Positions 6,467-31,429 of a stretch of 64,000 nt of DNA are shown one piece after another (positions within the stretch are counted from its first letter, which is position 1; each line of letters begins with the position of its first letter). The notes below the pieces were generated by a model. The model saw only the letters and a list, made by a program, of their open reading frames with translations. It did no database searches and was not told where the DNA came from. Origin of the DNA: Haliotis rufescens (lineage: Eukaryota); contig NW_025964057.1 in NCBI RefSeq assembly GCF_023055435.1, forward strand, positions 1,736,001 through 1,800,000, written 5' to 3'. A program made the translations under genes and the position numbers.

Positions 6467-6690
6467 TTAATCCTTCATAACCATGATCAGGTTCAGGATC
6501 ATCATAACCCAAAGCCTAATCTTAAGATAAATGTCCTCGTATTTGAAGTGTGGCCTCAAGCTGCGCTTCACAGAGTTGGTTGGACGTGTGACCTTGGACT
6601 CCATACAAACTGTCCGTGTATGTTGTATGCCTGTCCTCCTTGACCTTGACCGAGGCTTCTTTCTTCCGGTTCGAACTCGTCTTGGCATTA
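6467..6690 (-). CDS. Copy B terminal exon: Arg/Lys-rich linker plus C-terminal hydrophobic tail (candidate tail anchor)
   Basis: Acceptor attatttcag|TA ATG CCA at 6691/6690 is in phase with the donor at 7302. Reads VMPRRVRTGRKKPRSRSRR...IYLKIRLWVMMILNLIMVMKD*. Same 224-nt coding length and phase as copy C. Confidence 0.75.
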
Positions 6691-7301
6691 CTGAAATAAT
6701 AATCAAAATGGAACATGAGGTTATTTAAATCACCTGGTTTCATTTGTCATTGAACCGAAATGGAATACTGAAAAATTGGAATGGGATCATGTTGAAACCA
6801 CCACGGGCATTTTCCATCAGGAGATGGTGACAATAAAAGCAGTCAGTTCATTTTTAGCAAGAAATTAACACATTCAAATTCTTTTCCCAGCAAAATATAC
6901 CCTTTAGATATACTTATTTGTTAATTATGAAAAAGAGAGAGAATATCCATGCTGTCTGAAATATATTGGTCTAGATAAGGTGTTCCCTTCCACTGATTGT
7001 TTTCATCTATTTCACCTAGTATCTTGATTGAAAACATTTTCAGTGACCATAATACGCACACTCTTACCAACATATATATGATTATACCTAATAATCTGAT
7101 ACCAGAGACAGTACTGATAATGAACTCCTTCACTATTAACTTAAGTTCTTCAGTTCATCCATTCGTCATTGGATGCAGACTTCCAACAAATGTCTACATA
7201 TCAGGTCCAAGTAATTTGTCGCACTAATGGTACTGAAAAGAAACGATCTGCAGTTCACACTATGTAGCGTATAAAAGGTAGACAGTTAAGAAATTGCACA
7301 C

Positions 7302-10300
7302 CAGTCACTTGTACTATGCTGTTATTATTGCCGCACTGCACGTTGGAGATATCTGCACCAATGTCCAGTATCGAGCTCTGCCTTCCTCCATCAACAGCAT
7401 CTTTTCTCTGGCTACTTTCCCTGTCACCATCATCTCCACCACCAACATATTGTCCCTGCCTTCCTTCAACCGAGCCATCTCCGTCTCTTCTCCTTCCTAC
7501 ACCGACACCAGTGCCTCCTCTATCTCTCCTCCCAGAGGAATATTGATCTCTCCTCCACCTCCCTCCACCATCGTCATATTCTCCCTGCCTTCCTTCAACC
7601 GACCCATCTCCGTCTCTTCTCCTTCCTCCAATGACGTCAGTGCCTCCTCTATCTCTCCTTCCAGAGGAATATTGATCTCTCCTCCACCTCCCCCCACTAT
7701 CGTCATATTCTTCCTTCCTTCCTTCAACCGAGCCATCTCCGTCTCTTCTCCTTCCTCCACCGACACCAGTGCCTCCTCTATCTCTCCTTCCAGAGGAATA
7801 TTGATCTCTCCTCCACCTTCCCCCACCATCGTCATATTCTCCCTGCCTTCCTTCAACCGAGCAATCTCCGTCTCTTCTCCTTCCTCCACCGACACCAGTG
7901 CCTCCTCTATCTCTCCCTCCAGGTGAATATTGATCCCTCCTCCCTCTTCCTCGCCCACCAACATTTTCTCCCTGCTTTCCTTCAACCGAGCCATCTCCGT
8001 CTTCTCTCCTTCCTCCACCGACTCCAGTGCCTCCTCTATCTCTCCTTCCAGAGGAATATTGATCTCTCCTCCACCTTCCTCCACCATCGTCATATTCTCC
8101 CTGCCTTCCTTCAACCGAGCCATCTCCGTCTCTTCTCCTTCCTCCACCGACACAAGTGCCTCCTCTATCTCTCCTTCTAGAGGAATATTGATCTCTCCTC
8201 CACCTCCCCCCACTTTCGTCATATTCTTCCTGCCTTCCTTCAACCGAGCCATCTCCGTCTCTTCTCCTTCCTCCACCGACACCAGTGCCTCCTCTATCTC
8301 TCCCTCCAGGTGAATATTGATCCCTCCTCCATCTTCCTCGCCCACCAACATTTTCTCCCTGCTTTCCTTCAACCGAGCCATCTCCGTCTTTTCTCCTTCC
8401 TCTACCGACACCAGTGCCTCCTCTATCTCTCCCTCCAGGTGAATATTGATCCCTCCTCCATCTTCCTCGCCCACCAACATTTTCTCCCTGCTTTCCTTCA
8501 ACCGAGCCAACTCCGTCTCCTCTCCTTCCTCCACCGACTCCAGTGCCTCCTCTATCTCTCCTTCCAGAGGAATATTGATCTCTCCTCCACCTTCCCCCAC
8601 CATCGTCATATTCTCCCTGCCTTCCTTCAACCGAGCAATCTCCGTCTCTTCTCCTTCCTCCACCGACACCAGTGCCTCCTCTATCTCTCCTTCCAGAGGA
8701 ATATTGATCTCTGCTCCACCTCCCTCCACTATCGTCATATTCTTCCTTCCTTCCTTCAACAGAGCCATCTCCGTCTCTTCTCCTTCCTCCACCGACACCA
8801 GTGCCTCCTCTATCTCTCCTTCCAGAGGAATATTGATCTCTCCTCCACCTCCCCCCACTATCGTCATATTCTTCCTTCCTTCCTTCAACCGAGCCATTTC
8901 CGTCTCCTCTCCTTCCTCCACCGACTCCTGTGTCTCCTCTATCTCTCCCTCCAGTGGAATATTGATCTCTCCTCCATCTTCCTCCACCATCGTCATATTC
9001 TCCCTGCCTTCCTTCAACCGAGCCATCTCCGTCTCTTCTCCTTCCTCCACCGACACCAGTGCCTCCTCTATCTCTCCCTCCAGGTGAATATTGATCCCTC
9101 CTCCATCTTCCTCGCCCACCAACATTTTCTCCCTGCTTTCCTTCAACCGAGCCATTTCCGTCTCCTCTCCTTCCTCCACCGACTCCAGTGTCTCCTCTAT
9201 CTCTCCCTCCAGTGGAATATTGATCTCTCCTCCATCTTCCTCCACCATCGTCATATTGTCCCTGCTTTCCTTCAACCGAGCCATCTCCGTCTCTTCTCCT
9301 TCCTCCACCGACACAAGTGCCTCCTCTATCTCTCCTTCCAGAGAAATATTGATCTCTTCTCCACCTCCCTCCACCATCGTCATATTCTCCCTGCCTTCCT
9401 TCAACCGAGCAATCTCCGTCTCTTCTCCTTCCTCCACCGACACCAGTGCCTCCTCTGTCTCTCCTTCCAGAGGAATATTGATCTCTGCTCCACCTCCCTC
9501 CACTATCGTCATATTCTTCCTTCCTTCCTTCAACAGAGCCATCTCCGTCTCTTCTCCTTCCTCCACCGACACCAGTGCCTCCTCTATCTCTCCTGCCAGA
9601 GGAATATTGATCTCTCCTCCACCTCCCCCCACTATCGTCATATTCTTCCTTCCTTCCTTCAACCGAGCCATTTCCGTCTCTTCTCCTTCCTCCACCGACA
9701 CCAGTGCCTCCTCTATCTCTCCCACCAGGTGAATATTGATCTCTCCTCCATCTTCCTCGCCCACCAACATTTTCTCCCTGCCTTCCTTCAACCGAGCCAT
9801 CTCCGTCTCCTCTCCTTCCTCCACCGACTCCAGTGCCTCCTCTATCTCTCCCTCCAGTGGAATATTGATCTCTCCTCCATCTTCCTCCACCATCGTCATA
9901 TTCTCCCTGCTTTCCTTCAACCGAGCCATCTCCGCCTCTTCTCCTTCCTCCAATGACGTCAGTGCCTCCTCTATCTCTCCTTCCAGAGGAATATTGATCT
10001 CTCCTCCACCTCCCCCCACTATCGTCATATTCTCCCTGCCTTCTTTCAACTGAGCCATCTCCGTCCCTTCTCCTTCCTCCACCGACACCAGTGCCTCCTC
10101 TATCTCTCCCTCCAGGTGAATATTGATCCCTCCTCCATCTTCCTCGCCCACCAACATTTTCTCCCTGCTTTCCTTCAACCGAGCTACCTCCTCGTCTCCT
10201 TCCTCCACCGACTCCAGTGCCTCCTCTATCTCTCCTTCCAGAGGAATATTGATCTCTCCTCCACCTTCCTCCACCATCGTCATATTCTCCCTGCCTTCCT

Positions 10301-13300
10301 TCAACCGAGCCATCTCCGTCTCTCCTCCTTCCTCCACCGACACCAGTGCCTCCTCTATCTCTCCTGCCAGAGGAATATTGATCTCTCCTCCACATCCCCC
10401 CACTATCGTCATATTCTTCCTTCCTTCCTTCAACCGAGCCATTTCCGTCTCTTCTCCTTCCTCCACCGACACCAGTGCCTCCTCTATCTCTCCCACCAGG
10501 TGAATATTGATCCCTCCTCCATCTTCCTCGCCCAGCAACATTTTCTCCCTGCTTTCCTTCAACCGAGCCATCTCCGTCTCCTCTCCTTCCTCCACCGACT
10601 CCAGTGTCTCCTCTATCTCTCCCTCCAGTGGAATATTGATCTCTCCTCCATCTTCCTCCACCATCGTCATATTCTCCCTGCTTTCCTTCAACCGAGCAAT
10701 CTCCGTCTCTTCTCCTTCCTCCACCGACACAAGTGCCTCCTCTATCTCTCCTTCCAGAGGAATATTGATCTCTGCTCCACCTCCCTCCACTAACGTTATA
10801 TTCTTCCTTCCTTCCTTCAACAGTGCCATCTCCGTCTCTTCTCCTTCCTCCACCGACACCAGTGCCTCCTCTATCTCTCCTTCCAGAGGAATATTGATCT
10901 CTCCTCCACCTCCCCCCACTATCGTCATATTCTTCCTTCCTTCCTTCAACCGAGCCATTTCCGTCTCCTCTCCTTCCTCCACCGACTCCTGTGTCTCCTC
11001 TATCTCTCCCTCCAGTGGAATATTGATCTCTCCTCCATCTTCCTCCACCATCGTCATATTCTCCCTGCCTTCCTTCAACCGAGCCATCTCCGTCTCTTCT
11101 CCTTCCTCCACCGACACCAGTGCCTCCTCTATCTCTCCCTCCAGGTGAATATTGATCCCTCCTCCATCTTCCTCGCCCACCAACATTTTCTCCCTGCTTT
11201 CCTTCAACCGAGCCATCTCCGTCTTTTCTCCTTCCTCCACCGACACCAGTGCCTCCTCTATCTCTCCCTCCAGGTGAATATTGATCCCTCCTCCATCTTC
11301 CTCGCCCACCAACATTTTCTCCCTGCTTTCCTTCAACCGAGCCATTTCCGTCTCCTCTCCTTCCTCCACCGACTCCAGTGTCTCCTCTATCTCTCCCTCC
11401 AGTGGAATATTGATCTCTCCTCCATCTTCCTCCACCATCGTCATATTCTCCCTGCTTTCCTTCAACCGAGCCATCTCCGTCTCTTCTCCTTCCTCCACCG
11501 ACACAAGTGCCTCCTCTATCTCTCCTTCCAGAGAAATATTGATCTCTCCTCCACCTCCCTCCACCATCGTCATATTCTCCCTGCCTTCCTTCAACCGAGC
11601 AATCTCCGTCTCTTCTCCTTCCTCCACCGACACCAGTGCCTCCTCTGTCTCTCCTTCCAGAGGAATATTGATCTCTGCTCCACCTCCCTCCACTATCGTC
11701 ATATTCTTCCTTCCTTCCTTCAACAGTGCCATCTCCGTCTCTTCTCCTTCCTCCACCGACACCAGTGCCTCCTCTATCTCTCCTTCCAGAGGAATATTGA
11801 TCTCTCCTCCACCTCCCCCCACTATCGTCATATTCTTCCTTCCTTCCTTCAACCGAGCCATTTCCGTCTCTTCTCCTTCCTCCACCGACACCAGTGCCTC
11901 CTCTATCTCTCCCACCAGGTGAATATTGATCTCTCCTCCATCTTCCTCGCCCACCAACATTTTCTCCCTGCCTTCCTTCAACCGAGCCATCTCCGTCTCC
12001 TCTCCTTCCTCCACCGACTCCAGTGCCTCCTCTATCTCTCCCTCCAGTGGAATATTGATCTCTCCTCCATCTTCCTCCACCATCGTCATATTCTCCCTGC
12101 TTTCCTTCAACCGAGCCATCTCCGCCTCTTCTCCTTCCTCCAATGACGTCAGTGCCTCCTCTATCTCTCCTTCCAGAGGAATATTGATCTCTCCTCCACC
12201 TCCCCCCACTATCGTCATATTCTTCCTTCCTTCCTTCAACAGAGCCATCTCCGTCTCTTCTCCTTCCTCCACCGACACCAGTGCCTCCTCTATCTCTCCT
12301 TCCAGAGGAACATTGATCTCTCCTCCACCTCCCCCACTATCGTCATATTCTCCCTGCCTTCTTTCAACTGAGCCATCTCCGTCCCTTCTCCTTCCTCCAC
12401 CGACACCAGTGCCTCCTCTATCTCTCCCTCCAGGTGAATATTGATCCCTCCTCCATCTTCCTCGCCCACCAACATTTTCTCCCTGCTTTCCTTCCACCGA
12501 GCCACCTCCTCGTCTCCTTCCTCCACCGACTCCAGTGCCTCCTCTATCTCTCCTTCCAGAGGAATATTGATCTCTCCTCCACCTTCCTCCACCATCGTCA
12601 TATTCTCCCTGCCTTCCTTCAACCGAGCCATCTCCGTCTCTCCTCCTTCCTCCACCGACACCAGTGCCTCCTCTATCTCTCCTGCCAGAGGAATATTGAT
12701 CTCTCCTCCACCTCACCCCACTATCGTCATATTCTTCCTTCCTTCCTTCAACCGTGCCATTTCCGTCTCTTCTCCTTCCTCCACCGACACCAGTGCCTCC
12801 TCTATCTCTCCCACCAGGTGAATATTGATCCCTCCTCCATCTTCCTCGCCCACCAACATTTTCTCCCTGCTTTCCTTCAACCGAGCCATCTCCGTCTCCT
12901 CTCCTTCCTCCACCGACTCCAGTGTCTCCTCTATCTCTCCCTCCAGTGGAATATTGATCTCTCCTCCATCTTCCTCCACCATCGTCATATTCTCCCTGCT
13001 TTCCTTCAACCGAGCCATCTCCGTCTCTTCTCCTTCCTCCACCGACACAAGTGCCTCCTCTATCTCTCCTTCCAGAGAAATATTGATCTCTCCTCCACCT
13101 CCCTCCACCATCGTCATATTCTCCCTGCCTTCCTTCAACCGAGCAATCTCCGTCTCTTCTCCTTTCTCCACTGACGTCAGTGCCTCCTCCATCTCTCCCT
13201 CCGGTGGAATATTGATCTCTCCTCCATCTTCCTCCACTATCGTCATATTCTCCCGGCCTTCCTTCAACCGAGCCATCTCCGTCGCTTCTCTTTCCTTCAA

Positions 13301-14246
13301 CGACGTCAGTGCCTCCTCTATCTCTCCTTCCAGAGGAATATTGATCTCTGCTCCACCTCCCTCCACTAACGTTATATTCTTCCTTCCTTCCTTCAACAGT
13401 GCCATCTCCGTCTCTTCTCCTTCCTCCACCGACACCAGTGCCTCCTCTATCTCTCCTGCCAGAGGAATATTGATCTCTCTTCCACCTCCCCCCACTATCC
13501 TTATATTCTCCCTGCCTTCCTTCAACCGAGCAATCTCCGTCTCTTCTCCTTCCTCCACCGACACAAGTGCCTCCTCTATCTCTCCTTCCAGAGGAATATT
13601 GATCTCTGCTCCACCTCCCTCCACTATCGTCATATTCTTCCTTCCTTCCTTCAACAGAGCCATCTCCGTCTCTTCTCCTTCCTCCACCGACACCAGTGCC
13701 TCCTCTATCTCTCCTGCCAGAGGAATATTGATCTCTCCTCCACCTCCCCCCACTATCGTCATATTCTTCCTTCCTTCCTTCAACCGAGCCATTTCCGTCT
13801 TTTCTCCTTCCTCCACCGACACCAGTGCCTCCTCTATCTCTCCCACCAGGTGAATATTGATCCCTCCTCCATCTTCCTCGCCCACCAACATTTTCTCCCT
13901 GCTTTCCTTCAACCGAGCCATCTCCGTCGCTTCTCTTTCCTCCACTGACGTCAGTGCCTCCTCCATCTCTCCCTCGAGAGGAATATTGATCTCTCCTCCA
14001 CCTTCCTCCACCATCGTCATATGCGCACTCTTCTTCTGACAAAGCATGATCACTTTTTCTTTTCCAAGCTCCACCAACACCCCCAGGTTGACCTCTTTCC
14101 ATCTCTTTATCAGAGATGTCTTCAGTGTTACCGCAGTTAGCGCTAGGCTCTACTGGATTGCTAGAATCTCTTCGAGGTCTGACATTCATTCTTTCCCCAC
14201 TCGTGTTCTCGCCTGTTCTGTTACGAAAGTTCGTTTGAATTTCCAT
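7302..14246 (-). CDS. Copy B giant exon: ~51 x 43-aa Gly/Arg/Asp/Glu-rich repeats followed by a RHIM-like motif; one 1-bp frameshift at 12331-12335
   Basis: Acceptor tggtttcag|ACA ATG at 14250/14249. ORF 14246- starts in the G/R frame and ORF 10395- continues it after a C6->C5 run deletion. VQCG at 7341-7330. Donor ACT G|GTGTGC at 7302/7301. Corrected spliced product ~2,389 aa. Confidence 0.75.
7440..14020. repeat. Coding tandem repeat, 129-bp unit, with a 2190-bp higher-order duplication
   Basis: Unit GGGRWRRDQYSSGRRDRGGTGVGGGRRRDGDGSVEGRQGEYDD. Blocks starting at 9091 and 11281 are near-identical (offset 2190). Confidence 0.97.
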
Positions 14247-14456
14247 TGTCTGAAACCATAAGATGGCATTGTGAAACTTATTATTGGCATAATCTGTAAT
14301 CTGATGCTACCGCGTTTCCTTTCTCTCAAGTTTTGCATATACATATAAACCTACATGTTTAAACATATGTAATGAATGATCTGTTTGGCACGTTGCTACA
14401 CATGTACATAACTACCTCAAACATAGGTAACCATTGGTATAGCCAGTGCATTACAG

Positions 14457-14612
14457 TGATTGAATGTGTTTCAAGGCCGCTTTTGGCAAGATACCAGCAA
14501 TATCACGGCGGGGGACACAAGAATGGGCTTCACACATTTTATCCATGTCGGGATTCGAACCCGGGTCCTGGGCGTGACGAGTGACCACTTTAAGAGTCCC
14601 AACCGCTCCGTG
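14457..14612 (-). mobile_element. Short tRNA-derived SINE (same family as 39850-40017) in intron 1 of copy B
   Basis: ccagcaatatcacggcgggggacac...gggcttcacacatt...ggattcgaacccggg...gcgtgacgag. Absent from the paralogous site at ~32715-32740. Confidence 0.8.
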
Positions 14613-15025
14613 CAAAGTAACACCAGTGTTCAATGTCCTGTGTGGCTTCAGTCTGCAGTACATATAGATGTGGTGTAGATGGTGTATGTGTTATAAAGCT
14701 GTAATGCTGATTACACATTAGTACCAAAATCTTCCACTCGTTCCATGGTAAGCAAAGGGGTTCCGGTAAACAAGAATTGTTTATGTTAAAACTGAGTAAA
14801 AATTGTCATACAAATGTATTTCCTGGAGTCCCTTATTAAAAAAAACCCACAAAACAAAGGCTGATTAATGTAATTATGGGGAGGCCTGTCCAGAAGCGAC
14901 AAACGCCTTCATATAATCCATTCTACGCTTAAAAAAATATCATAAGCATGTGTTTATGTACCACAAGTTACGTGTAGTGTCTTCAAACAAGCACCACTAA
15001 GGAAAGGAATGAAAATAACGCCTAC

Positions 15026-15165
15026 CTGTCCTGGCTCCCACATTATCTGATAGATACAGCTTCGGCTGCCTTCTCAGTCCATCTAAAGTCCAACGTAGTA
15101 GCTGACTGACTGATATGGAAGATTTAACGTGCGCTTTCCGACTGTAGCGTATTTCGCGATGGTAT
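15026..15165 (-). other. Predicted first exon of copy B, possibly coding MWEPGQ
   Basis: Begins ~25 bp below the TATA box. Donor CAG|GTAGGC at 15026/15025. ATG at 15043 gives six codons in phase 0 with ACA ATG of exon 2. Confidence 0.55.
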
Positions 15166-15169
15166 AACG

Positions 15170-15295
15170 TAGTAGCGCGATGGTAGCTCTTATATACTGT
15201 CCGGTCCGGCAACGCGATCATTAACCAATCGGCTTAGTGCATTCAGAAGTGGCAATCTCTGCTTAGTATGCCTGCATAATGTCACGTGATGTTAG
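15170..15295 (-). promoter_or_regulatory. Pol II promoter of copy B: TATA box, CCAAT box, E-box
   Basis: TATATAAG (minus) 15196-15189, CCAAT 15225-15229, CACGTG 15283-15288. Conserved with 4380-4520. Confidence 0.72.
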
Positions 15296-15384
15296 GACAT
15301 CAAGCCTCGTGGATGAAAGAGGTATTGCTCTTTTCGCCAATCTCGCCCCTTTCGGCCACTTTTCACAATCGCAAGTGTAGGAGA

Positions 15385-16065: not shown

Positions 16066-17825
16066 GTAGGAAATGGGACAACTTCTGCCCCAACAGTAAA
16101 CAGGCTTCCGCCTGAACACGATCTTAGATGCACATTTGTTGGCGGGTTAAAATTTCATCTGTGTTCATTTTGGTTAGTCTTATATATACTGAGCTACTTA
16201 TTTATAAGAATGATACTAATACATTCCATTTATGTTCGAAAACAACAACGTTTAGAAATACAGTTCCAACATGTTTGTGTAATCAAATATAAACTGACGG
16301 GATATACTGATTAGCGTAAATAACTAGTAAAAGAACTGCCGTGAACGTAAGATGAGTCCCATAACTTATTCGGTCGGACGCTTTCTCCCAGTTTGCAGTT
16401 TCTTATCTCTGACAAACCATGCAGAGCTGTCGTCGGCACACTAGGATGTTTGCATCACGTGACGGTCATGAGGACAAATATATACCCGACTTACAATGGC
16501 TACGAGTTACCTCAGAGACCTATTTTCACCGGAAATAGACGATCGTGTTAAGATAGAGGTGCTGCTGAGATCTTTCACCTCGCCACCCGATGCGACTTGT
16601 GGACGCTTACACCAATTACAGGTTACAATTATATACCAGATTAATGCACTGGGGTATGAGTGTGTGTTAAGATCGGGACCAGGTACCTCGTTGCTAGGTG
16701 CTGGATGTGGATCTTGTTGTGTGAGTTTTTATGCAGGCACCAACATATGGTGATGTTTCACCTGGATTTTGACCGTCATAGCAATAGGTTGGGCCGACAA
16801 TCCAGTGACAGTAACAGCGTGTGTGGCGCCACCAGGTGGACACGGCATACTTGCCGTACTTTATATTCGTGGGTGTCATTTCGCTTCTTTTCTCGCGACA
16901 TGGAACATGACATGGATAACAAGCATAATAATAATTGGTTTTGTTTCCATTGGAACAAAACATATTTTATATAGTTGATCGTCAATGTACCAAGAAAATA
17001 TATATAATAGGATACATATGTCACATATGACAAAGGGAGATAACTTTTGACACTCTAATGGTACCTCTTTAGATTAAAACACTCAACGTGTTCTTTTATT
17101 CCATCAACTGTAAGGTTATGGAACACTATTGCTGCAGCAGGTAGAAATTGTACATCTACATCCCAATTCAAGTCATTCATATAGAAAGAGCAATGTATTG
17201 CATCTCCATATTTTTCCTTTGATGTTAGAAAGTTAAATATTTATCATACTCGATTAAGATACATGAAAAGCTAGTTAAATTATGATTTATACAGAATAGA
17301 GATATCGAGAAATGTGATCCAATATGTCAATATGGTAATCCATGTGAAATCTCATTTCATTATTTGTATTTTGTCCATTGTATGTCCACCAAAGAAAATC
17401 CATGTTAATAATAATTCGGGACATTTTACAGAACAACAATGTTAAATGAGATTTAAGTTTGATGTTAAACGGAAATGAATGTTTGTCCATTATCGAAAAT
17501 CCACTTATCTTTAAGGCAGTGCAAATGTTTAATAGTCATTCAAAGAGATTTGGGTAACACATTAATGTAAATATACTAGTCTCTCTTTTGTACATTTCTT
17601 TTATATCTATACACTCGTCTTCTTTTCTGTTATCCTTGTATATGATTTACTGTACAAGCTTTGTAAATACCACGGAGGGGGAATCCTAAGTTGGATAGCT
17701 TGCTCCCAATCCATTTCAATCTGAATAAAATATGTTTAAACAAAAAAACACTTCCATGTCACATGTTGAGAAAGTTTTGACTGTTTTACATTACATGATG
17801 TTTTTGATATGACGGCTCATTTTAG

Positions 17826-18930
17826 TCTCTTTGTATGTTGTGCTTGTGTCTCTTTGTATGTTGTGCTTGTGTCTCTTTGTTTGGTGTGCTTGTGTCTCTT
17901 TGTATGTTGTGCTTGTGTCTCTTTGTATGGTGTGCTTGTGTCTCTTTGTATGATGTGCTTGTGTCTTTTTGTATGTTGTGCTTGTGTCTCTTTGTATGGT
18001 GTGCTTGTGTCTCTTTGTGTGATGTGCTTGTGTCTCTTTGTATGGTCTGCTTGTGTCTCTTTGTATGTTGTGCTTGTGTCTCTTTGTTTGGTGTGCTTGT
18101 GTCTCTTCGTATGATGTTATTGTGTCTCTTTGTATGGTGTGCTTGTGTCTCTTTGTGTGATGTGCTTGTGTCTCTTTGTATGTTGTGCTTGTGTCTCTTT
18201 GTTTGGTGTGCTTGTGTCTCTTTGTATGATGTTATTGTGTCTCTTTGTATGGTGTGCTTGTGTCTCTTTGTATGGTGTTATTGTGTCTCTTTGTATGATG
18301 TTATTGTGTCTTTTTGTATGGTGTGCTTGTGTCTCTTTGTATGATGTGCTTGTGTCTCTTTGTATGATTTTATTGTGTCTCTTTGTATGGTGTACTTGTG
18401 TCTCTTTGTATGGTGTGCTTGTGTCTCTTTGTATGATGTGCTTGTGTCTTTTTGTATGTTGTGCTTGTGTCTCTTTGTATGATGTGCTTGTGTCTCTTTG
18501 TATGATGTTATTGTGTCTCTTTTTATGGTGTGCTTGTGTCTCTTTGTATGATGTGTTTGTGTCTCTTTGTATGTTGTGCTTGTGTCTCTTTGTATGTTGT
18601 GCTTGTGTCTCTTTGTATGATGTGCTTGTGTCTCTTTGTATGATGTTATTGTGTCTCTTTGTATGATGTTATTGTGTCTCTTTGTATGGTCTGCTTGTGT
18701 CTCTTTGTTTGGTGTGCTTGTGTCTCTTTGTATGAGGTGCTTGTGTCTCTTTGTATGATGTGCTTGTGTCTCTTTGTATGATGTGCTTGTGTCTCTTTGT
18801 ATGATGTGCTTGTGTCTCTTTGTATGATGTTATTGTGTCTCTTTGTATGATGTTATTGTGTCTCTTTGTATGGTGTGCTTGTGTCTCTTTGTATGGTGTG
18901 TTTGTGTCTTTTTGTATGGTGTGCTTGTAG
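17826..18930. repeat. Minisatellite, 23-bp unit, ~48 copies
   Basis: Unit tgtgtctctttgtatgatgtgct and variants. Confidence 0.97.
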
Positions 18931-19339: not shown

Positions 19340-19900
19340 TCCAATATGTAATATGGGGGGCACACCTGGTCCAGTTACCACAATCGCGACACCAAAATAG
19401 TTGTTTTTCGGTTCGAGTCTCAGATTTGCCAGAAATTTTACCTTTGATTTGTCAAGACAAAATCTGTGATCGAGGGTTTCGCAAAAGAACTACAACCTAC
19501 GACGACATGTCATGATATGTCTGAAATACTGTTCAGTGGTAATATATCACAAGTGACGAAACTTTGGTGAAAAATCAAAAACAAAGCGTTATCTGTTAAT
19601 CTGTTTTACTATGACATGTGGCTCTACAACGGTAGAAGAGAACAGGAAACACAGTTACCATCCTGTGGGCACAATCATACCAATACGTGTAGAGGCATCT
19701 ACAGGATTCCCCTTGGAGGATGCTCAACATTTCCATTGATGAATACTGTGAACAGTCACCATATGCTGAGCAACAGATATACAATGTAATGCACACGCAT
19801 TGGTTTAGCCGATACGGTTTACACTTGTATTCCATACAGGAATAGTTCTACCCACCCCTAGCGAGCCACAAGAGCCCACCTTTCCTGCTGCCCGCCCGCA
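19340..19900 (-). pseudogene. Relic (copy D) of the 3' UTR and flank of the repeat-RHIM gene unit
   Basis: Colinear with 4950-5650 and 22350-23050, e.g. gcacacgcattggtttagccgatacggtttacacttgtattccatacaggaatagttctacccacccct. Confidence 0.75.
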
Positions 19901-20720
19901 CCCTACCAATCCTCCCCGCCAGCCCCGCTCCTCTCCCATCCGATCAGCTCCTCTCCCACCAGCCCCGCAGATCTCCCACCCTCTCCTCTCCCAACAGCCC
20001 CTTTCCTCTCCCACCCGCTCCTCTCCCAACAGCCCCTTTCCTCTCCCACCCGCTCCTCTCCCACCCTCTCCTCTGCCACCAGCCCCGCTCCTCTCCCACC
20101 CTCTCCTCTCCCACCAGCCCCGCTCCTCTCCCACCCGCTCCTCTCCCAACAGCCCCGCTCCTCTCCCACCCGCTCCTCTCCCAACAGCCCCGCTCCTCTC
20201 CCACCCGCTCCTCTCCCAACAGCCCCGCTCCTCTCCCACCCGCTCCTCTCCCACCCGATCCGCTCCTCTCCGAACAGCCCCTTTCCCCTCCCACCCGCTC
20301 CTCTCCCACCCGCTCCTCTCCCACCCGATCCGCTCCTCTCCCACCAGCCCAGCTCCTCTCCCACCCGATCCGCTCCTCTCCAAACAGCCCCGCCCCTCTC
20401 CCATCCGCTCAGCTCCTCTCCCAAAAGCCCCGCCCCTCTCCATTCCGATCCGCTCCTCTCCCACCCGCTCCTCTTCTCTCCGCACCCACCTTCTCCTCTC
20501 CCACCGGCCCCGCCCCTCTCCCATCTGTTCTCCCCCTCTCCCAACAGCCCCGCCCCTCTCCCATCCGATCCGCTCCTCTCCCACCCGCTCCTCTTCTCTC
20601 CGCACCCACCTTCTCTTCTCCCACCGGCCCCGCTCCTCTCCCATCTGTTCTCCCCCTCTCACACCCACTCCGCCCCTCTCCCACCCACTCCGCTCCTCTC
20701 CAACCCACTTCAACCCATTT
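19900..20720. repeat. C/T-rich complex satellite built from ccgctcctctccca units (15-21 bp)
   Basis: Directly visible. ORFs across it are low-complexity artefacts. Confidence 0.92.
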
Positions 20721-20949
20721 CAAATGAAATGGTACGACGAGACCTTAAGTCTGCCATTGACTTGACTGATTTGTGTAATATCAGCCTTACAGTGTTAAGC
20801 TGTACATATTAAACATACAGATAAGACTATTTGCAGCAACTATGGTACATGGTGTGTAACAAATATATCCTGAGGGGCAAAAGAAAGTATACCGAGTTTG
20901 TATTTGAAAATTGAAAGAACTGTCATTAAATCTGATATTGCCTATGTAA

Positions 20950-21700: not shown

Positions 21701-22033
21701 AACCAAATTTGTTAATAATAGTCAAGGTTGTGTGCAACATCTCTGTCACATGTACTGTAGGCCTGGAACCTCTTGAGTGCTGGAATAAAGATTGATTGAT
21801 TGAACCCCCCCCCAAAAAAAACCCCAAAACAACAACAAAAAAACAACAATTATATGTAAAATGATTAGTGATTTTGTTATCTTGTGGATGCAATTTTGAG
21901 TGATTATGGAATTTGAATATACATCCCTCAAGGCAATGGTTGTTGTATTCATTGAAACATGTTTATTGTACTGACCATATAAGATGAGGTGGGGTGAAAT
22001 GAGTTTTAACGTCGCGATCACGATTAGTGCACT

Positions 22034-22194
22034 NNNNNNNNNNNNNNNNNNNNNNNNNNNNNNNNNNNNNNNNNNNNNNNNNNNNNNNNNNNNNNNNNNN
22101 NNNNNNNNNNNNNNNNNNNNNNNNNNNNNNNNNNNNNNNNNNNNNNNNNNNNNNNNNNNNNNNNNNNNNNNNNNNNNNNNNNNNNNNNNNNNNN
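22034..22194. other. Assembly gap (N run)
   Basis: 161 N, with SINE-like sequence on both sides. Confidence 1.
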
Positions 22195-22310
22195 TTAATG
22201 CCTAGCGCTAGGCAGTGTTGCAACAAGTACCATCTTTGAACGTCTTTTGGTGTGACGTGACCGGGTTTGGAACCACCAACATCTGTCCTCTACGTCACAG
22301 AGGCCGTCAA
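22195..22310 (-). mobile_element. Partial Meta/MESC-type SINE, paralogous to the remnant at 4820-4900
   Basis: ttaatgcctagcgctaggcag...caagtaccatctttgaacgtcttttggtgtgacg is the reverse complement of the SINE core. Confidence 0.7.
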
Positions 22311-23094
22311 CTATTAAATGAACACGAAAATTTAGAGGGAAAACGTAGAGGCAAACCTGGCCCAGTAGTCGTATCTGTTAGTGCATGCTAGACCTGGGTT
22401 CGAATCCGAGATTCGCATGGATTTTGATCCGTGGTTAGTTGTCATCACTATACTTGTTATCATGAGTTTTTCAAAAAAGAGTTAAACGTCTACGATGTCA
22501 TAAAGGCAGCTCACACATCAAGCTGACATGCATTTACATTTCTGAAATTCTGTTTTGTGGCTTCAGATTCCAAAAGACTGAATCGACGTGACAGAATACA
22601 GACTTTAGTTTGCCTTATTTCCGTCATATGTAGTAAATATTGGTAATTACGAAATTATAAATGTTTGAAGACACCAAATCTTCAAATGACACAATAAACA
22701 CACAATCGTTATCTCAGCTATTTTATTGAGACACGTACAAAGTTATAAGGGAAAACAAAGTCAACATCCTTTGGGCGAAATCCTACTCTGTTCGTTAACA
22801 ACAATAACTGCCCAAAAAGTAGTATGAAAGATACTTGTCATACATGCAGAGCCATCTACAGGATTCCTCTTTGAGGATACTGAAACACTTCCATTGATAA
22901 ATAATGTGAATAATCACCATCTACTTAGCAACAGAAATACAATGTAATGCACACGCATTGGTTTAACCGATACGGTTTACAGTTGTATTCCATACAGGAA
23001 TAGTTCTACCCACCCCTCCCGACCCACAAGAGCCTACCATCCTCAGACCACCCACTCCCTCCCTTTCCCCTTTCCCCATCCCAACGTGCGCAGA

Positions 23095-23482
23095 TTTGAT
23101 GCCTGGAATGCGTGAACAGGTTTTGTTGAAATATGTGCAGGATACTATGATTTAAAAAAAAAATTTAAACATAAAATCTAGAGTGAATTCCACTCTTCAG
23201 AAAGAGATATTAACGAGATGCATGTTCAACTGAGAGATGTACCTTATTTTTAAACTATATTTGCAAGTTTAACATTTTGCTTGAAGATGTCCAAGCGAAA
23301 TGTTGAACTCGTAAATGTGGTTTACAAATAAGATATCTCTCGGTAGAACATGCATCTCCTTAATATGTTTTCCTGAAGTACTGAATTCACTCTGGATTCT
23401 ATGTTTAAAATATTACTTGCAAAATCATGTGTCATATCATATTTCAATAAAACAACTCTTCACACATTCGAGGCATAAAATA
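23095..23482. repeat. Degenerate palindrome, ~190-bp arms and 8-nt loop, in the predicted 3' UTR of copy C
   Basis: Centre aacattttgcttg-aagatgtc-caagcgaaatgtt at 23271-23304. Further pairs include gagatgcatgttc/gaacatgcatctc and agagtgaattc/gaattcactct. Confidence 0.85.
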
Positions 23483-23546
23483 CGCTCTTGAAATATTATA
23501 AACCCACCTGCGCACGTTATCATAAGTAACAATTTCTAGGATTAAT

Positions 23547-23770
23547 TTAATCCTTCATCAACATGTTCACGATCATGATTATCATAACCTCGATTGAAAG
23601 CCCAATCTTGAGGTATTCTTTGATATCAATGTCTTTGAACTGTGACCTCACAGATTTGGTTGGACGTGTGATCTTGGTCCCCACACCATATTTCCGTGTA
23701 CGTTGTCTGACTGCCTTCCTTGACCTTGACCGAGGCTTGGTCCTTCTGGTTTTAACTCGTCTTGGCATGA
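23547..23770 (-). CDS. Copy C terminal exon: basic linker plus C-terminal hydrophobic tail
   Basis: Acceptor gtcatttcag|TC ATG CCA at 23771/23770. Reads VMPRRVKTRRTKPRSRSRK...YLKIGLSIEVMIIMIVNMLMKD*. Intron 608 bp versus 611 bp in copy B. Confidence 0.75.
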
Positions 23771-24378
23771 CTGAAATGACAATGAAAGACAGGACCATGA
23801 GGGTATTTAAATCACCTGGCTTTGTGTGTTATTGCTTTAAAATCTGATTCTGAATAATAAAGATGGGATCTTGTCGACACCACCACGATTACATGGTCAT
23901 TCATATGAGATGTTGAAAATACATGCATTTTAAATAAGGAATTGAGAGATAAAAAGTATTTTCCCAGCAAAGATAATTAAACAATTTCAACCTTGTTAAT
24001 TTTTAGATATGCCCATTTTTTGTGTATGGAAAAGAGAGAACTATATGTGCTGTTTGAAATGTATGGGTCAAGATAAGAAGATATTTCCTTTGACAATATC
24101 TTGATTGTAACCATTTTCCAGTGACCATAATATGCACACTCTGACTTATATATTAATGATTATGCAAAATAGACTGAAACCCACTACAGATTGATTAGCA
24201 ACTCCCTAAATATGAACTAAGTTCACCGATTTGTCATTGGATGTAAACTTTAACAACGATCTACAGCTCAGGTCTGTTGTCGTTCTAATAGCACGTATCA
24301 CGTGAAGAGAGTAAATCTGCAGTTAACACTATGTAGTGTATAAGGTTATACAAGGTAGATTATTGAGAAATTGCATAC

Positions 24379-27300
24379 CAGTGATATTCTTGACATGCAC
24401 TATGATGTTAGAATTCCCACACTGCGCGTTGGAGATATCTCCATCGATGTCAAGCGTGAAGTTTTGTCCTCTGACGACGCCATCTCTTCTCTGGCTACTT
24501 TGTCTGTCTCGGGCATCTCCTCTCAGTTTTCGTCCGCTGTTAATATCTTGTCTTTTCGTCATTCTTTCTTTACCAATATACTCTCCTGTTCGCTCACTTC
24601 CACTTTCATCGTACTCCTGTTTTCCGTCAACAGCGACATGTCCGTCTGGTCGTCCTCCACCGACTTCAGTGCCTTGTCCTTCTCTTCCTCCAGTGGTATA
24701 TTGGTCTCTCCTCCATTTTCCTCCACCACCCCCATATTCTCCATGCTTTCCTTCCACAGCACCGTCTCCAATTCTTCTTCCTCTTCCTTCACCGCCGGCT
24801 GTGTCTCCTCTGTATCTCCCCCCAGGGGAACGTTGATCTCTCCTCAATCTTTCTCCACCACTACCATATTCTCCCTGCTTTCCACCAACAGCGCCATCTC
24901 CGTCTCGTCTTTCTCTTCTTCCACCAGCGCCAATCTTTCCTCTATCCCCAGCCCCAGTATATTGGTCTCTCCTCCACCTTCCTCCACTCCTATCATATTC
25001 TCCCTGCTTTCCTCCAACAGCACCATCTCTGTCTCTTCTTCTTCCTCCACCGACGTCAATGTCTTCACAATCCTTTCCTACAGTGGTTTGATGATCTCTC
25101 TTCCATCTTCCTCCACCACTCTTACATTCTCACTGCTTTTCACCAACAGCGCCATCTCTGTCTCTTCTTCTTCCTCCACCGACGTCAATGTCTTCACAAT
25201 CCTTTCCTACAGTGGTTTGATGATCTCTCTTCCATCTTCCTCCACCACTCTTACATTCTCCCTGCTTTTCATCAACAGCGCCATCTCCAATTCTTCTTCC
25301 TCCACCGACATCAGTGTCTTCACTATCCATTCCTACAGTGGTATGTTGATCCCCCTTCCATCTTCCTCCACCACTCTTACATTCTCCCTGCTTTTCACCA
25401 ACAGCGCCATCTCTGTCTCTTCTTCTTCCTTTACCGACATCAGTGTCTTCACTATCCATTCCTACAGTGGTATGTTGATCTCTCTTCCATCTTCCTCCAC
25501 CACTCTTACATTCTCCCTGCTTTTCACCAACAGCGCCATCTCTGTCTCTTCTTCTTCCTCCACCGACGTCAATGTCTTCACTATCCATTCCTACAGTGGT
25601 ATGTTGATCTCTCTTCCATCTTCCTCCACCACTCTTACATTCTCCCTGCTTTTCACCAACAGCGCCATCTCTGTCTCTTCTTCTTCCTCCACCGACGTCA
25701 ATGTCTTCACTATCCATTCCTACAGTGGTAGTTTGATCTCTCTTCCATCTTCCTACACCTCTCTTACATTCTCCCTGCTTTTCATCAATAGTGCCATCTC
25801 CATTTTTTCTTCCTCGACCGACTTCAGTGTCTCCTCTAACCATCTCCCCTGTGGTATATTGATCTTTCCTCCATCTTTTTCCACCACCACCCTGCTTCTC
25901 TTCAACAGCACCATCTCCAGTACTTCCCCCTCTTCCTCCACGGCCGCTTGTATCTCCTCTATATCTTCCCCCAGGGGAACGTTGAACTCCCCTCCATCTT
26001 CCTCCACCACTACCATATTCTCCCTGCTTTTCTTCAACAGCGCCATCTCCAATTCTTCTTCCTCCACCGACATCAGTGTCTCCTTTAGCCACCCACCTGG
26101 TGGTATATTGATCTCTCCTCAATCTTCCTCCACCACCACCACCACCACCACCGTATTCTCCCTGCTTTCCACCAACAGCGCCATCTCCGTCTTGTCTTTC
26201 TCTTCTTGCACCAGCGCCAATCTTTCCTCTATCCCCACCCCCAGTATATTGGTCTCTCCTCCACCTTCCTCCACTCCTATCATATTCTCCCTGCTTTCCT
26301 CCAACAGCACCATCTCTGTCTCTTCTTCTTCCTCCACCGACGTCAATGTCTTCACAATCCTTTCCTACAGTGGTATGTTGATCTCTCTTCCATCTTCCTC
26401 CACCACTCTTACATTCTTCCTGCTTTTCACCAACAGCGCCATCTCTGTCTCTTCTTCTTCCTCCACCGACGTCAATGTCTTCACTATCCATTCCTACAGT
26501 GGTATGTTGATCTCTCTTCCATCTTCCTCCACCACTCTTACATTCTCCCTGCTTTTCACCAACAGCGCCATCTCTGTCTCTTCTTCTTCCTCCACCGACG
26601 TCAATGTCTTCACAATCCTTTCCTACAGTGGTTTGATGATCTCTCTTCCATCTTCCTCCACCACTCTTACATTCTCCCTGCTTTTCACCAACAGCGCCAT
26701 CTCTGTCTCTTCTTCTTCCTCCACCGACGTCAATGTCTTCACAATCCTTTCCTACAGTGGTTTGATGATCTCTCTTCCATCTTCCTCCACCACTCTTACA
26801 TTCTCCCTGCTTTTCATCAACAGCGCCATCTCCAATTCTTCTTCCTCCACCGACATCAGTGTCTTCACTATCCATTCCTACAGTGGTATGTTGATCCCTC
26901 TTCCATCTTCCTCCACCACTCTTACATTCTCCCTGCTTTTCACCAACAGCGCCATCTCTGTCTCTTCTTCTTCCTCCACCGACGTCAATGTCTTCACTAT
27001 CCATTCCTACAGTGGTATATTGATCTCTCTTCCATCTTCCTCCACCACTCTTACATTCTCCCTGCTTTTCACCAACAGCGCCATCTCTGTCTCTTCTTCT
27101 TCCTCCACCGACGTCACTGTCTTCACTATCCATTCCTACAGTGGTAGTTTGATCTCTCTTCCATCTTCCTCCACCTCTCTTACATTCTCCCTGCTTTTCA
27201 TCAATAGTGCCATCTCCATTTTTTCTTCCTCGACCGACTTCAGTGTCTCCTCTAACCATCTCCCCTGTGGTATATTGATCTTTCCTCCATCTTTTTCCAC

Positions 27301-30300
27301 CACCACCCTGCTTCTCTTCAACAGCACCATCTCCAGTACTTCCCCCTCTTCCTCCACGGCCGCTTGTATCTCCTCTATATCTTCCCCCAGGGGAACGTTG
27401 AACTCCCCTCCATCTTCCTCCACCACTACCATATTCTCCCTGCTTTTCTTCAACAGCGCCATCTCCAATTCTTCTTCCTCCACCGACATCAGTGTCTCCT
27501 TTAGCCACCCACCTGGTGGTATATTGATCTCTCCTCAATCTTCCTCCACCACCACCACCACCACCACCGTATTCTCCCTGCTTTCCACCAACAGCGCCAT
27601 CTCCGTCTCGTCTTTCTCTTCTTCCACCAGCGCCAATCTTTCCTCTATCCCCACCCCCAGTATATTGGTCTCTCCTCCACCTTCCTCCACTCCTATCATA
27701 TTCTCCCTGCTTTCCTCCAACAGCACCATCTCTGTCTCTTCTTCTTCCTCCACCGACGTCAATGTCTTCACAATCCTTTCCTACAGTGGTTTGATGATCT
27801 CTCTTCCATCTTCCTCCACCACTCTTACATTCTCCCTGCTTTTCACCAACAGCGCCATCTCCAATTCTTCTTCCTCCACCGACATCAGTGTCTTCACTAT
27901 CCATTCCTACAGTGGTATTTTGATCTCTCTTCCATCTTCCTCCACCACTCTTACATTCTCCCTGCTTTTCACCAACAGCGCCATCTCTGTCTCTTCTTCT
28001 TCCTCCACCGACGTCAATGTCTTCACTATCCATTCCTACAGTGGTATGTTGATCTCTCTTCCATCTTCCTCCACCACTCTTACATTCTCCCTGCTTTTCA
28101 CCAACAGCGCCATCTCTGTCTCTTCTTCTTCCTCCACCGACGTCAATGTCTTCACTATCCATTCCTACAGTGGTATGTTGATCTCTCTTCCATCTTCCTC
28201 CACCACTCTTACATTCTCCCTGCTTTTCATCAACAGCGCCATCTCCAATTCTTCTTCCTCCACCGACATCAGTGTCTTCACTATCCATTCCTACAGTGGC
28301 ATGTTGATTTCTCTTCCATCTTCCTCCACCACTCTTACATTCTCCCTGCTTTTCACCAACAGCGCCATCTCTGTCTCTTCTTCTTCCTCCACCGACGTCA
28401 ATGTCTTCACTATCCATTCCTACAGTGGTATGTTGATCTCTCTTCCATCTTCCTCCACCACTCTTACATTCTCCCTGCTTTTCATCAACAGCGCCATCTC
28501 TGTCTCTTCTTCTTCCTCCACCGACGTCAATGTCTTCACTATCCATTCCTACAGTGGTATGTTGATCTCTCTTCCATCTTCCTCCACCACTCTTACATTC
28601 TCCCTGCTTTTCACCAACAGCACCATCTCTGTCTCTTCTTCTTCCTCCACCGACGTCAATGTCTTCACTATCCATTCCTACAGTGGTATGTTGATCTCTC
28701 TTCCATCTTCCTCCACCACTCTTACATTCTCCCTGCTTTTCACCAACAGCACCATCTCTGTCTCTTCTTCTTCCTCCACCGACGTCAATGTCTTCACAAT
28801 CCTTTCCTACAGTGGTATGTTGATATATCTTCCATCTTCCTCCACCACTCTTACATTCTCCCTGCTTTTCATCAACAGCGCCATCTCTGTCTCTTCTTTT
28901 TCCTCTACCGACATCAGTGTCTTCACTATCCATTCCTACAGTGGTATGTTGATCTCTCTTCCATCTTCCCCCACCACTCTTACATTCTCCCTGCTTTTCA
29001 CCAACAGCGCCATCTCTGTCTCTTCTTCTTCCTCTACCGACATCAGTGTCTTCACTATCCATTCGTACAGTGGTATGTTGATCTCTCTTCAATCTCAATC
29101 CACCGCTCTCACATTCTCCCTGCTTTTCATCAACAGCGCCATCTCGGTCTCTTATTCTTCCTCCATCGACGTCAATGTCTTCACTATCCATTCCTACAGT
29201 GGTAGTTTGATCTCTCTTCCATCTTCCTCCACCTCTCTTACATTCTCCCTGCTTTTCATCAATAGTGCCATCTCCATTTTTTCTTCCTCGACCGACTTCA
29301 GTGTCTCCTCTAACCATCTCCCCTGTGGTATATTGATCTTTCCTCCATCTTTTTCCACCACCACCCTGCTTCTCTTCAACAGCACCATCTCCAGTACTTC
29401 CCCCTCTTCCTCCACGGCCGCTTGTATCTCCTCTATATCTTCCCCCAGGGGAACGTTGAACTCCCCTCCATCTTCCTCCACCACTACCATATTCTCCCTG
29501 CTTTTCTTCAACAGCGCCATCTCCAATTCTTCTTCCTCCACCGACATCAGTGTCTCCTCTAGCCACCCACCTGGTGGTATATTGATCTCTCCTCAATCTT
29601 CCTCCACCACCACCACCACCACCACCACCACCACCACCACCACCGTATTCTCCCTGCTTTCCTCCAACACCACCATCTCTGTCTCTTCTTCTAAATCCAC
29701 CGACATCAGTGTCTCCTCTAGCCACCCACCTGGTGGTATATTGATCTCTCTTCCATCTTCGTCCAACACCATCGTATTCTCCCAGCTTTCCTACCAGAGC
29801 GCCATCTCCTCTTCTTTTTCCTCCACCGACGTCAATACCTCCTCTATCTCTTCCTCCAGGGGCACATTGACCCCTCCTCCATCTTCCTCCGCCACCAACA
29901 CCATCGTATTCTCCCAGCTTTCCTTCCAGAGCGCCATCTCCTCTTTTTTTTCCTCCAACGACGTCAATACTTCCTCTATCTCTTCCTCCAGGGGCACATT
30001 GACCCCTCCTCCACCTTCCTCCACCACCACCACCACCGTATTCGCCCAGCTTTCCTTCCAAAGTGCCATCTGCTCTTCTTTTTCGTTTTCCTCCACCGAC
30101 GTCAATACCTCCACTTTCTCTTCCTCCAGGGGCACATTGACCCCTCCTCCATCGTCCTCCACCACCAACACCATCGTTTTCTCCCAGCTTTTCGTCCAAA
30201 GTGCCATCTGCTCTTCGTTTTCGTTTTCCTCCACCGACGTCAATACCTCCTCCATCTCTTCCTCCAGAGGCACATTGACCCCTCCTCCATATTCCTCTAC

Positions 30301-31156
30301 AACCACCACCACGGTATTCGCCCAGCTTTCCTTCCAGAGTGCCATCTCCTTTTCTTTTTCGTTTTCCTCCACCGACGTCAATATCTCCACTATCTCTTCC
30401 TCCAGGGGCACATTGACCCCTCCCCCATCTTCCTCCGCCACCACCACCGTTTGCTCCCTGCTTTCCTTCCAGAGTGCCATCTGCTCTTCTTTTTCTTTTT
30501 CCTCCACCGATGTCAGTCTTTCTTCTGTATCCACCTTCAGTGGTATATTGATCTCCCCTCATTCTTCCTCCACGACCACCGTATTCTCCCAGCTTTCCTT
30601 CCAGAGCGCCATCTCCTCTTCTTTTTCCTCCACCGACGTCAATACCTCCTCTATCTATTCCTCCAGAGGCACATTGACCCCTCCTCCATCGTCCTCCACC
30701 ACCAACACCATCGTTTTCTCCCAGCTTTTCGTCCAAAGTGCCATCTGCTCTTCGTTTTCGTTTTCCTCCACCGACGTCAATACCTCCTCTATCTCCTCCT
30801 CCAGAGGCACATTGAACCCTCCTCCATCGTCCTCCACCACCAACACCATCGTTTTCTCCCAGCTTTTCGTCCAAAGTGCCATCTGCCCTTCGTTTTCGTT
30901 TTCCTCCACCGACGTCAATACCTCCTCTATCTATTCCTCCAGAGGCACATTGATCCCTCTTCCATCTTCTTCTACCGCCACCGACACCACCGCATTTTCC
31001 ATGCTCGTCTGAAAAAGCATCATTGATGTCTTCACTTATACCGCAGCTTGCGTCAGACTCTATTGGATTGATAGAATCTCTTCGAGGTCTGACATTCTTT
31101 CTTTTTCCACTCGTAATTTCCCTTCTTCTTTTACCAAAAGAGTCCAGAATTTCCAT
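24379..31156 (-). CDS. Copy C giant exon: ~50 x 43-aa G/R/D/E/K-rich repeats followed by a RHIM-like motif; one in-frame TGA at 25132-25130
   Basis: Acceptor tgatttcag|ACA ATG at 31160/31159. ORFs 31156- and 24847- share a frame, separated by GGA->TGA. AQCG at 24427-24416. Donor ACT G|GTATGC at 24379/24378. Product ~2,333 aa if the stop is corrected. Confidence 0.75.
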
Positions 31157-31429
31157 TGTCTGAAATCAAAAGATGGCATTGTGAATCTTTGCATTGTTGC
31201 GATGTTCTGTAATCTGCTGCCACCACATATTTGGGTAGGTTTGTTTTTCCTCAAAGTTTGCATCCCCATATTTCGTCTTTCACTCTATAAACTGGTTTCT
31301 GTTGAGACAGGAACTCTGTAGTGGCGGAAAACCAACAAATACAACAACCAAACAAGTAAGTGAGTGAATGTTATCTGATGCCGAACAACAATATTTCAGC
31401 TACATTACGACTGTCACTAAACCCAGACC

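Follow-up and report, generated by a model that had tools for sequence, protein, structure and literature searches.

Giant-exon repeat proteins of the filaggrin/hornerin type and trichohyalin are encoded by one huge exon holding dozens of near-identical Gly/Arg-rich units. Their evolution is fast and concerted, and the constraint on them is compositional, not positional. FUS-family RGG proteins, which phase-separate, combine many RG/GR dipeptides with aromatic stickers. Both kinds resemble the predicted products of two genes, here called gene 1 and gene 2, in a 64,000-nucleotide (nt) stretch of the red abalone (Haliotis rufescens) genome (NCBI RefSeq GCF_023055435.1, NW_025964057.1, 1,736,001-1,800,000). 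This stretch is referred to as the window, and positions are those of the window. Both genes lie on the minus strand, gene 1 at 6467-14249 and gene 2 at 23547-31159.

The reading favoured here, with a probability of roughly 0.55, is that they form a tandem pair of fast-evolving repeat-protein genes restricted to abalone (at genus or lineage level), coding now or until very recently, with at least two exons each and products of ~2,300 amino acids (aa). Selection for an intact reading frame has acted on both genes. No relative was found for either: they are orphans confined to one locus, and across the whole 1.33-Gb assembly the repeat DNA, the N-terminus, the C-terminal segment and the tail exon are restricted to these two genes. 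An initial annotation of the window had described two paralogues of one architecture, with a short N-terminus, about 50 in-frame repeats of ~43 aa, a 22-residue motif, an intron and a basic tail with a hydrophobic end. This description was borne out. The motifs translate exactly as it quoted them (7371-7306 and 24457-24392), its junction coordinates (7302/6690 and 24379/23770) are exact and would give canonical GT-AG introns of phase 1 in both copies, and each gene has a separate tail exon of 73 codons, basic and hydrophobic at its end. As it had also stated, each giant exon carries one lesion, a 1-base-pair (bp) loss at 12335-12331 in gene 1 and a TGA at 25132-25130 in gene 2. The parts of the two genes are as follows.

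7302-14249, minus strand: giant exon of gene 1, with the ATG at 14246-14244, a unique N-terminus, the repeats and a unique C-terminal segment; the last base is G 7302
12331-12335, minus strand: lesion of gene 1, a 1-bp loss that leaves a G5 run against G6 in nine sister units
7306-7371, minus strand: conserved 22-aa segment of gene 1, ILDIGADISNVQCGNNNSIVQV, with the tetrad VQCG
6691-7301, minus strand: intron of gene 1 as predicted from the sequence, phase 1, 611 nt, GT...AG, donor G/GT at 7302/7301, acceptor TTTCAG before 6690
6467-6690, minus strand: tail exon of gene 1, codons 6688-6470, 73 aa with 20 Lys+Arg and a terminal hydrophobic helix, TAA at 6469-6467
24379-31159, minus strand: giant exon of gene 2, with the ATG at 31156-31154, 49-50 units and a unique C-terminal segment
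25130-25132, minus strand: lesion of gene 2, an in-frame TGA where sister units have GGA, in the context GEKQ*ECK
24392-24457, minus strand: conserved 22-aa segment of gene 2, TLDIDGDISNAQCGNSNIIVHV, with the tetrad AQCG
23771-24378, minus strand: intron of gene 2, predicted likewise, phase 1, 608 nt, GT...AG, donor G/GT at 24379/24378, TTTCAG before 23770
23547-23770, minus strand: tail exon of gene 2, codons 23768-23550, 73 aa with 22 Lys+Arg and a terminal hydrophobic segment, TAA at 23549-23547
22034-22194, no strand: assembly gap (N) between the genes, in AT-rich intergenic DNA

The gap lies 1.35 kb beyond the gene 2 stop and 7.8 kb upstream of the gene 1 ATG. It touches no exon of either gene model and is crossed by no relevant frame.

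In gene 1 a unique N-terminus of ~80 aa is followed by 50-51 units in the RW..DQY frame, all 43 aa long with the exception of two 42-aa units, and then by ~50 unique residues that include the 22-mer. The units of gene 2 are 41-53 aa long, fall into eight length classes, run in a single frame throughout and are built in higher-order blocks. At the gene 1 lesion the unit frame switches coordinate class from mod 2 to mod 0 between 12446 and 12189, a spacing of 257 = 2 x 129 - 1; two other G5 runs in gene 1 are substitutions that keep the unit length. The lesion could be a homopolymer assembly error or a genuine frameshift. As assembled, the ATG frame of gene 1 is open for 2,249 aa (7500-14246, minus strand), and once past the lesion it runs through 36 units in a second frame, acidic and helix-like (EINIPLEGEIEEAL...). 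Since this second frame has stops in the gene 2 consensus unit, its peptide is probably not a conserved product. In both tail exons an ATTAAA hexamer overlaps the TAA stop (6465-6472 and 23545-23552, minus strand); used as a poly(A) signal, it would leave both genes with a very short 3' untranslated region.

The two genes are the products of one duplication. The duplicated block spans 5606-14311 and 23010-31224 and stops ~65-100 bp upstream of each ATG, beyond which the 5' flanks of gene 1 and gene 2 are unrelated. Within it the ATG context, the GT-AG sites and the intron phase are identical between the copies. The plus strand is strongly pyrimidine-rich in two long blocks, at 8-14 kb and 24-31 kb, and these coincide with the 129-bp tandem arrays of the two genes (7434-14022 and 24653-30980). 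The coding strand, by its base skews, is ~75% purine.

The case for coding is carried chiefly by the pattern of insertions and deletions (indels) and of stop codons. Both the unit period and every unit length in the two arrays are divisible by 3, the frame being kept. In gene 2 the RW..DQ frame alone is open, the other two holding 216 and 60 stops. Between the paralogues all six exon indels (9, 3, 3, 6, 6 and 12 nt) are multiples of 3, compared with 4/13 in the intron and 0/5 in the 3' flank (together 4/18); the hypergeometric probability of all six falling among the ten multiples of 3 is ~0.0016. In the gene 1 intron some indels have lengths not divisible by 3; one of these, 8 nt long, lies ~50 nt past the donor. 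Because this indel puts the unspliced read-through frames out of register, coding would end at the donor, and both genes are predicted to be spliced. The three unique coding segments are stop-free in both copies despite 135 substitutions and 19-27% divergence (neutral simulation, P ~0.015-0.02). Among gene 1 repeat variants no stop-creating change was observed where 3.6 were expected (P=0.024); stop avoidance among gene 2 repeat variants was not significant. The frame-preserving indels and the stop-free unique segments speak for genes that are protein-coding at present or were so in the recent past. The ratio of nonsynonymous to synonymous change (dN/dS) between the paralogues is 0.32 in the C-terminal unique segment (Fisher P=0.003) and 0.54 in the N-terminus. 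The best-conserved part is the 22-mer, in which 16/22 residues are identical. Taken together, the pattern suggests that selection maintained, as it commonly does in disordered regions, an open frame with a given composition, single residues being little constrained.

The arms consist of Gly at 27-30%, Arg at 14-20%, Asp at 11-12% and apolar residues at 10-18%, carry a net positive charge, and contain 151-274 RG/GR dipeptides, the higher count being that of gene 1. Per unit there are about ten Arg, a single Trp and one or two Tyr. The very large disordered arm of the initial annotation agrees with this composition, and the arm is almost certainly intrinsically disordered. About 95% of each protein would thus be a disordered Arg/Gly/Asp-rich polyampholyte of ~50 units of ~43 aa. 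The Trp, Tyr and Arg of the units would amount to a sticker-and-spacer make-up. On the sticker-and-spacer principle established for disordered proteins rich in Arg and aromatics, a 50-valent chain of this kind would be expected to self-associate into a condensate- or gel-like state or bind nucleic acids. The short C-terminal module, made up of the beta-prone 22-mer, a polybasic stretch and a hydrophobic helix, most likely sets the location of the protein, with the terminal helix possibly serving as a weak tail anchor. Both self-association and membrane anchoring are proposed from these features of the predicted proteins.

Several observations weigh against the reading as a coding pair. Between the repeat consensus units dN/dS is 1.1, and in the tail exon it is 1.3. 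In the unique segments the three codon positions differ about equally often (38/45/52, P=0.34). The unique parts of exon 1 have diverged as much as the intron (0.268 and 0.265), the tail exon somewhat less (0.189). There is one ORF-breaking lesion per copy (ORF, open reading frame). Composition alone can also hold a frame open, as it does for 302 aa in a nearby purine-rich minisatellite and for 2,249 aa in the second frame of gene 1.

Searches for relatives add to these points. A Pfam search of the separate pieces gave no domain at E<=10. Word-indexed protein-library searches were blank for the C-terminal region as part of a 1,678-aa query, for the N-terminal region as part of one of 2,249 aa, and for a C-terminal piece of 147 aa. 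The ESM Atlas gave no match for either query, language-model recognition scores were low, and an exact look-up of five ORFs in the protein collection found none present. HMMER searches against 1.84 billion representatives returned eight bacterial proteins only, all with propeller repeats of ~43 aa (E 1e-12 to 3e-4). The gene 1 unit, compared over 7303-8100 (minus strand), shares Y-D-x5-W...R-R-D...T-x-V-G with these repeats at the same spacing, a curious likeness, and the shared residues are not kept in the main unit of gene 2. Kinship was rejected: a single abalone unit scores E>=5 and two units E>=7.8, so that the significance comes from counting near-identical units repeatedly. Membership of the Kelch-type beta-propellers was likewise rejected, there being no Pfam match, an apolar content of ~10% and no hydrophobic strand pattern recognised by family models. 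Literature searches turned up nothing specific on abalone G/R-rich repeat proteins or on mollusc RHIM proteins.

The alternative that survives best is that both genes have died, a lineage-specific pair that used to code for protein and in which decay has just begun and present function is gone. It would account for exactly one ORF-breaking lesion per copy, for a dN/dS of ~1 in the repeats and the tail, for exons about as diverged as the intron, and for the lack of any model of these ORFs in the protein collection. However, a single lesion per 7 kb is few for copies that differ by ~25%, and the one in gene 1, where a G6 homopolymer has lost 1 bp, is of a type common among assembly errors. The indels and the stop avoidance, moreover, show frame selection since the duplication. 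We regard a dead pair as unlikely.

Other repeats are abundant in the window. Six further long minisatellites lie at 1728-3176, 17825-18928, 31448-32437, 35804-37959, 50124-50965 and 60821-62990, with periods, in that order, of 58, 23, 57, 52/71, 60 and 31 bp. The 57-bp array begins ~300 bp upstream of the gene 2 ATG and interrupts any shared promoter. A purine-rich minisatellite of another kind occupies 19805-20713 (minus strand). Its periods (20, 35 and 120 bp) are not all divisible by 3. A frame of 302 aa rich in Gly, Glu, Arg and Trp is open in it, from which it follows that long ORFs arise easily here by composition alone. A stretch at 39941-40012 (minus strand) matches an Rfam tRNA with 30.1 bits and is not called by ARAGORN. 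It lies within a repeat of which a second copy is found at 14455-14593, 200-350 bp upstream of the gene 1 ATG. The repeat is probably a tRNA-derived short interspersed nuclear element (SINE).

These surroundings bear on a second alternative, in which the arrays are non-coding purine-rich minisatellites in a segmental duplication, and composition together with recent array amplification has produced the ORFs, the ATG and the splice-like signals incidentally. A coding strand of 75% purine in a window full of minisatellites is in line with this, and the unrelated array at 19805-20713 gives a local example of an open frame. Variation among gene 1 units is nearly even over the codon positions, and the gene 2 array consists of recently copied higher-order blocks whose frames would stay open without selection. 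The difficulty is that every unit length is a multiple of 3 and that the unique flanks, unlike the intron and the 3' flank, are open with multiple-of-3 indels only. Nor are the arrays a genome-wide satellite, and the dN/dS of 0.32 in the C-terminal segment also speaks against non-coding DNA. On balance this origin is quite unlikely.

For the coding pair, the tail exon bears on where the proteins would reside. It is very basic in both genes (20-22 Lys+Arg per 73 residues). AlphaFold2 (AF2) predicts one confident helix in it, at residues 46-72 of 73 with a pLDDT (predicted local distance difference test score) of ~90, and nothing else; the prediction thus has a single C-terminal hydrophobic helix within the last ~30 residues. 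The last 13-19 residues are hydrophobic, the stretch ends 2 residues before the stop, and the Kyte-Doolittle 19-residue means are 1.85 and 1.99, over the usual 1.6. To this extent a tail anchor, as proposed at first, is possible. The hydrophobic core, however, runs uninterrupted for no more than 13 residues (gene 1) or 11 residues (gene 2), and the Hessa free energies sum to positive values (+2.7 and +3.35-3.4 kcal/mol), which belongs with the points against the favoured reading. The core is Met-rich and has an internal Asn in both genes and also a Glu in gene 2. A tail anchor is plausible but marginal, and the tail may act as a weak one. Weak anchors of the moderately hydrophobic, base-flanked kind are what it fits. 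It could equally be a protein-binding helix beside a nuclear- or nucleolar-type basic patch.

The orientation of the proteins depends on their N-termini. The modelled N-termini of either gene contain no signal peptide and no other membrane segment. A conserved acceptor-like TTTCAG stands 3 nt before the ATG in both genes (in gene 1 this possible acceptor is just upstream of 14249), so an upstream exon could join in phase 0 and possibly add a signal peptide. In that case the tail could be a C-terminal processing signal. With such possible 5' exons the topology could be cytosolic or secreted, which again counts against the favoured reading. A third alternative builds on the same site: the genes would encode secreted precursors (matrix, mucus or adhesive-type coacervating proteins) or polyproteins cut at R-x-R-R, with the signal peptide in an upstream exon and a GPI-type (glycosylphosphatidylinositol) or propeptide signal at the C-terminus. 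RWRR and RRR are present in every gene 1 unit, and disordered proteins with tandem repeats abound in the shell and secreted proteomes of abalone (PMC6003135). Yet no upstream exon was found next to either gene, the 5' flanks being unrelated beyond ~65-100 bp, and the basic sites are not conserved in the main unit of gene 2. Together with the modelled N-termini, this makes secretion highly unlikely.

The initial annotation had favoured another identity, in which the products are sensors or adaptors held by a tail anchor, and the VQCG segment lets them nucleate a signalling amyloid of the RHIM type. A RHIM is defined by a tetrad (V/I)-Q-(V/I/L/C)-G within 18-22 residues (PMC9444067). The VQCG of gene 1 fits this definition, and the AQCG of gene 2 falls outside it with Ala at position 1. 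The G-x-x-N-x-hydrophobic pattern after the tetrad is present in both (GNNNSI in gene 1, GNSNII in gene 2). Further points for the proposal are that the 22-mer is the part most alike between the paralogues, that a C-terminal helix is predicted, and that RHIMs are typically flanked by disorder (PMC4262963).

Profile searches do not bear it out. The Pfam RHIM model (PF12721) has 22 positions and a cut-off of 20 bits, and hmmscan found nothing at E<=10 on either motif exon. As a positive control the model was run over the whole genome, where it picked out 11 places with scores of 17.3-27.8 bits; five exceed the cut-off, and none is at this locus. Segments found elsewhere by the profile scan, in coordinates of their own contigs (handles C35, C68 and C101), include the following.

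C35, 4328554-4328613: segment scored by PF12721
C35, 19245429-19245470: segment scored by PF12721
C35, 4289066-4289122: segment scored by PF12721
C35, 6864065-6864109: segment scored by PF12721
C68, 1080021-1080059: segment scored by PF12721
C101, 13596692-13655348: three segments scored by PF12721 within ~60 kb

These segments are textbook-like (..I.I..CSG-VQIG-xxN-x-M), and the gene 1 segment resembles their core half. Against a small profile built from them gene 1 reaches 12-15 bits (core half only) and gene 2 4-6, compared with 17-46 for left-out true segments, although the profile is over-fitted and its scores are indicative only. In a deep mutational scan of RIPK1 and RIPK3 the aliphatics at -8 and -6 from the tetrad, which form the first beta-interface, were as essential for nucleation as the tetrad's own (bioRxiv 10.64898/2026.02.19.706818). 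These positions are Asp/Gly in gene 1 and Asp/Asp in gene 2, so that the aliphatic pair is absent, whereas the abalone RHIM-scoring segments mostly have Ile, Val, Tyr or Leu near them. For the 22-mer itself AF2 predicts no secondary structure (pLDDT ~55).

The motif is also unspecific. A RHIM-tetrad regular expression (regex) gave two matches in the six-frame translation of the window against 0.29 expected per shuffled 64-kb window, and by extrapolation several thousand matches are expected by chance in the genome. Two spots in the window, at 55415-56361 (minus strand, VTQIGTNTIQH) and 3952 (minus strand, TTVQLGKKNIV, with stop codons a few residues upstream), do not resemble the 22-mer of the gene pair. 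When the PDB was searched by sequence with the segment, no RHIM chain came out above a designed armadillo protein (E=0.066) or tau repeat R2 (E=0.16), a ranking that itself marks the segment as unspecific. The likeness to the tau/MAP2/MAP4 repeat (PF00418) consists of D-[LI]-S-N-V-Q...C-G-x-x-x-N/S-I-x-x-V, aligned to tau R2 DLSNVQSKCGSKDNIKHV with a 2-residue gap (7306-7395). It was rejected along with that to the designed armadillo, since the E-values are not significant and there is no Pfam match, PF00418 included; the segment is single-copy here, and the resemblance was judged to be chance.

Immune-signalling domains were sought as well. Pfam searches of all pieces found no kinase, TIR, death-fold, Z-alpha or STAND domain, nor a sensor or adaptor domain of any other kind, and the proposed sensor or adaptor identity is not supported. 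We judge the RHIM resemblance to be a chance half-motif, and we give hardly any credence to a RHIM-type adaptor. RHIM profiles are information-poor (PMC4262963), which leaves room for a divergent amyloid motif; that the giant polyampholyte arms are anchored on organelles and the beta-prone 22-mer is a divergent RHIM-related amyloid switch, making, beside the canonical RHIM segments of this genome, a novel membrane-tethered polymerising platform of mollusc innate immunity, is nevertheless the least probable account of all. A caution follows: chance alone should produce thousands of matches to a RHIM tetrad regex in this genome, and the genome's own RHIM-scoring segments are the right yardstick.

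A tandem pair of lineage-restricted coding genes remains the preferred reading. If expressed, the products would rank with the largest disordered orphan proteins so far described from molluscs, and would amount to a natural 50-valent polymer of Arg, aromatic and acidic stickers and spacers joined to a possible membrane anchor. The pair may serve as a model for the origin of taxon-restricted repeat genes, for their expansion by concerted evolution and for the way they keep a frame open under almost no positional constraint.

Compared with RHIM proteins (RIPK1, RIPK3, TRIF, ZBP1 and viral M45/ICP6), the gene 1 product has the tetrad and x-x-N-x-hydrophobic inside disorder. It differs in that the segment is below Pfam detection, has Ala in the paralogue, lacks the aliphatic pair and any immune-signalling domain, and sits where a repeat arm of 2,200 aa ends, beside a C-terminal helix. 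With tail-anchored proteins (MAVS and others of the mitochondrial outer membrane) the pair shares a single predicted helix at the extreme C-terminus, basic flanks and a modelled N-terminus free of a signal peptide. Its core, however, is short (11-13 uninterrupted residues), Met-rich, with an internal Asn (in gene 2 also a Glu), and positive in insertion energy, and the pair has no CARD or folded domain and no sequence homology to these proteins. The filament-forming N-terminal CARD of MAVS-like polymerising adaptors has no counterpart here, the N-terminus giving no Pfam match. A further likeness is to the filaggrin-type and FUS-family proteins, from which the abalone pair is set apart in having no S100, RRM or other folded domain and no homology to them, and in joining a polyampholyte arm high in Asp/Glu to a separate basic, hydrophobic tail exon.

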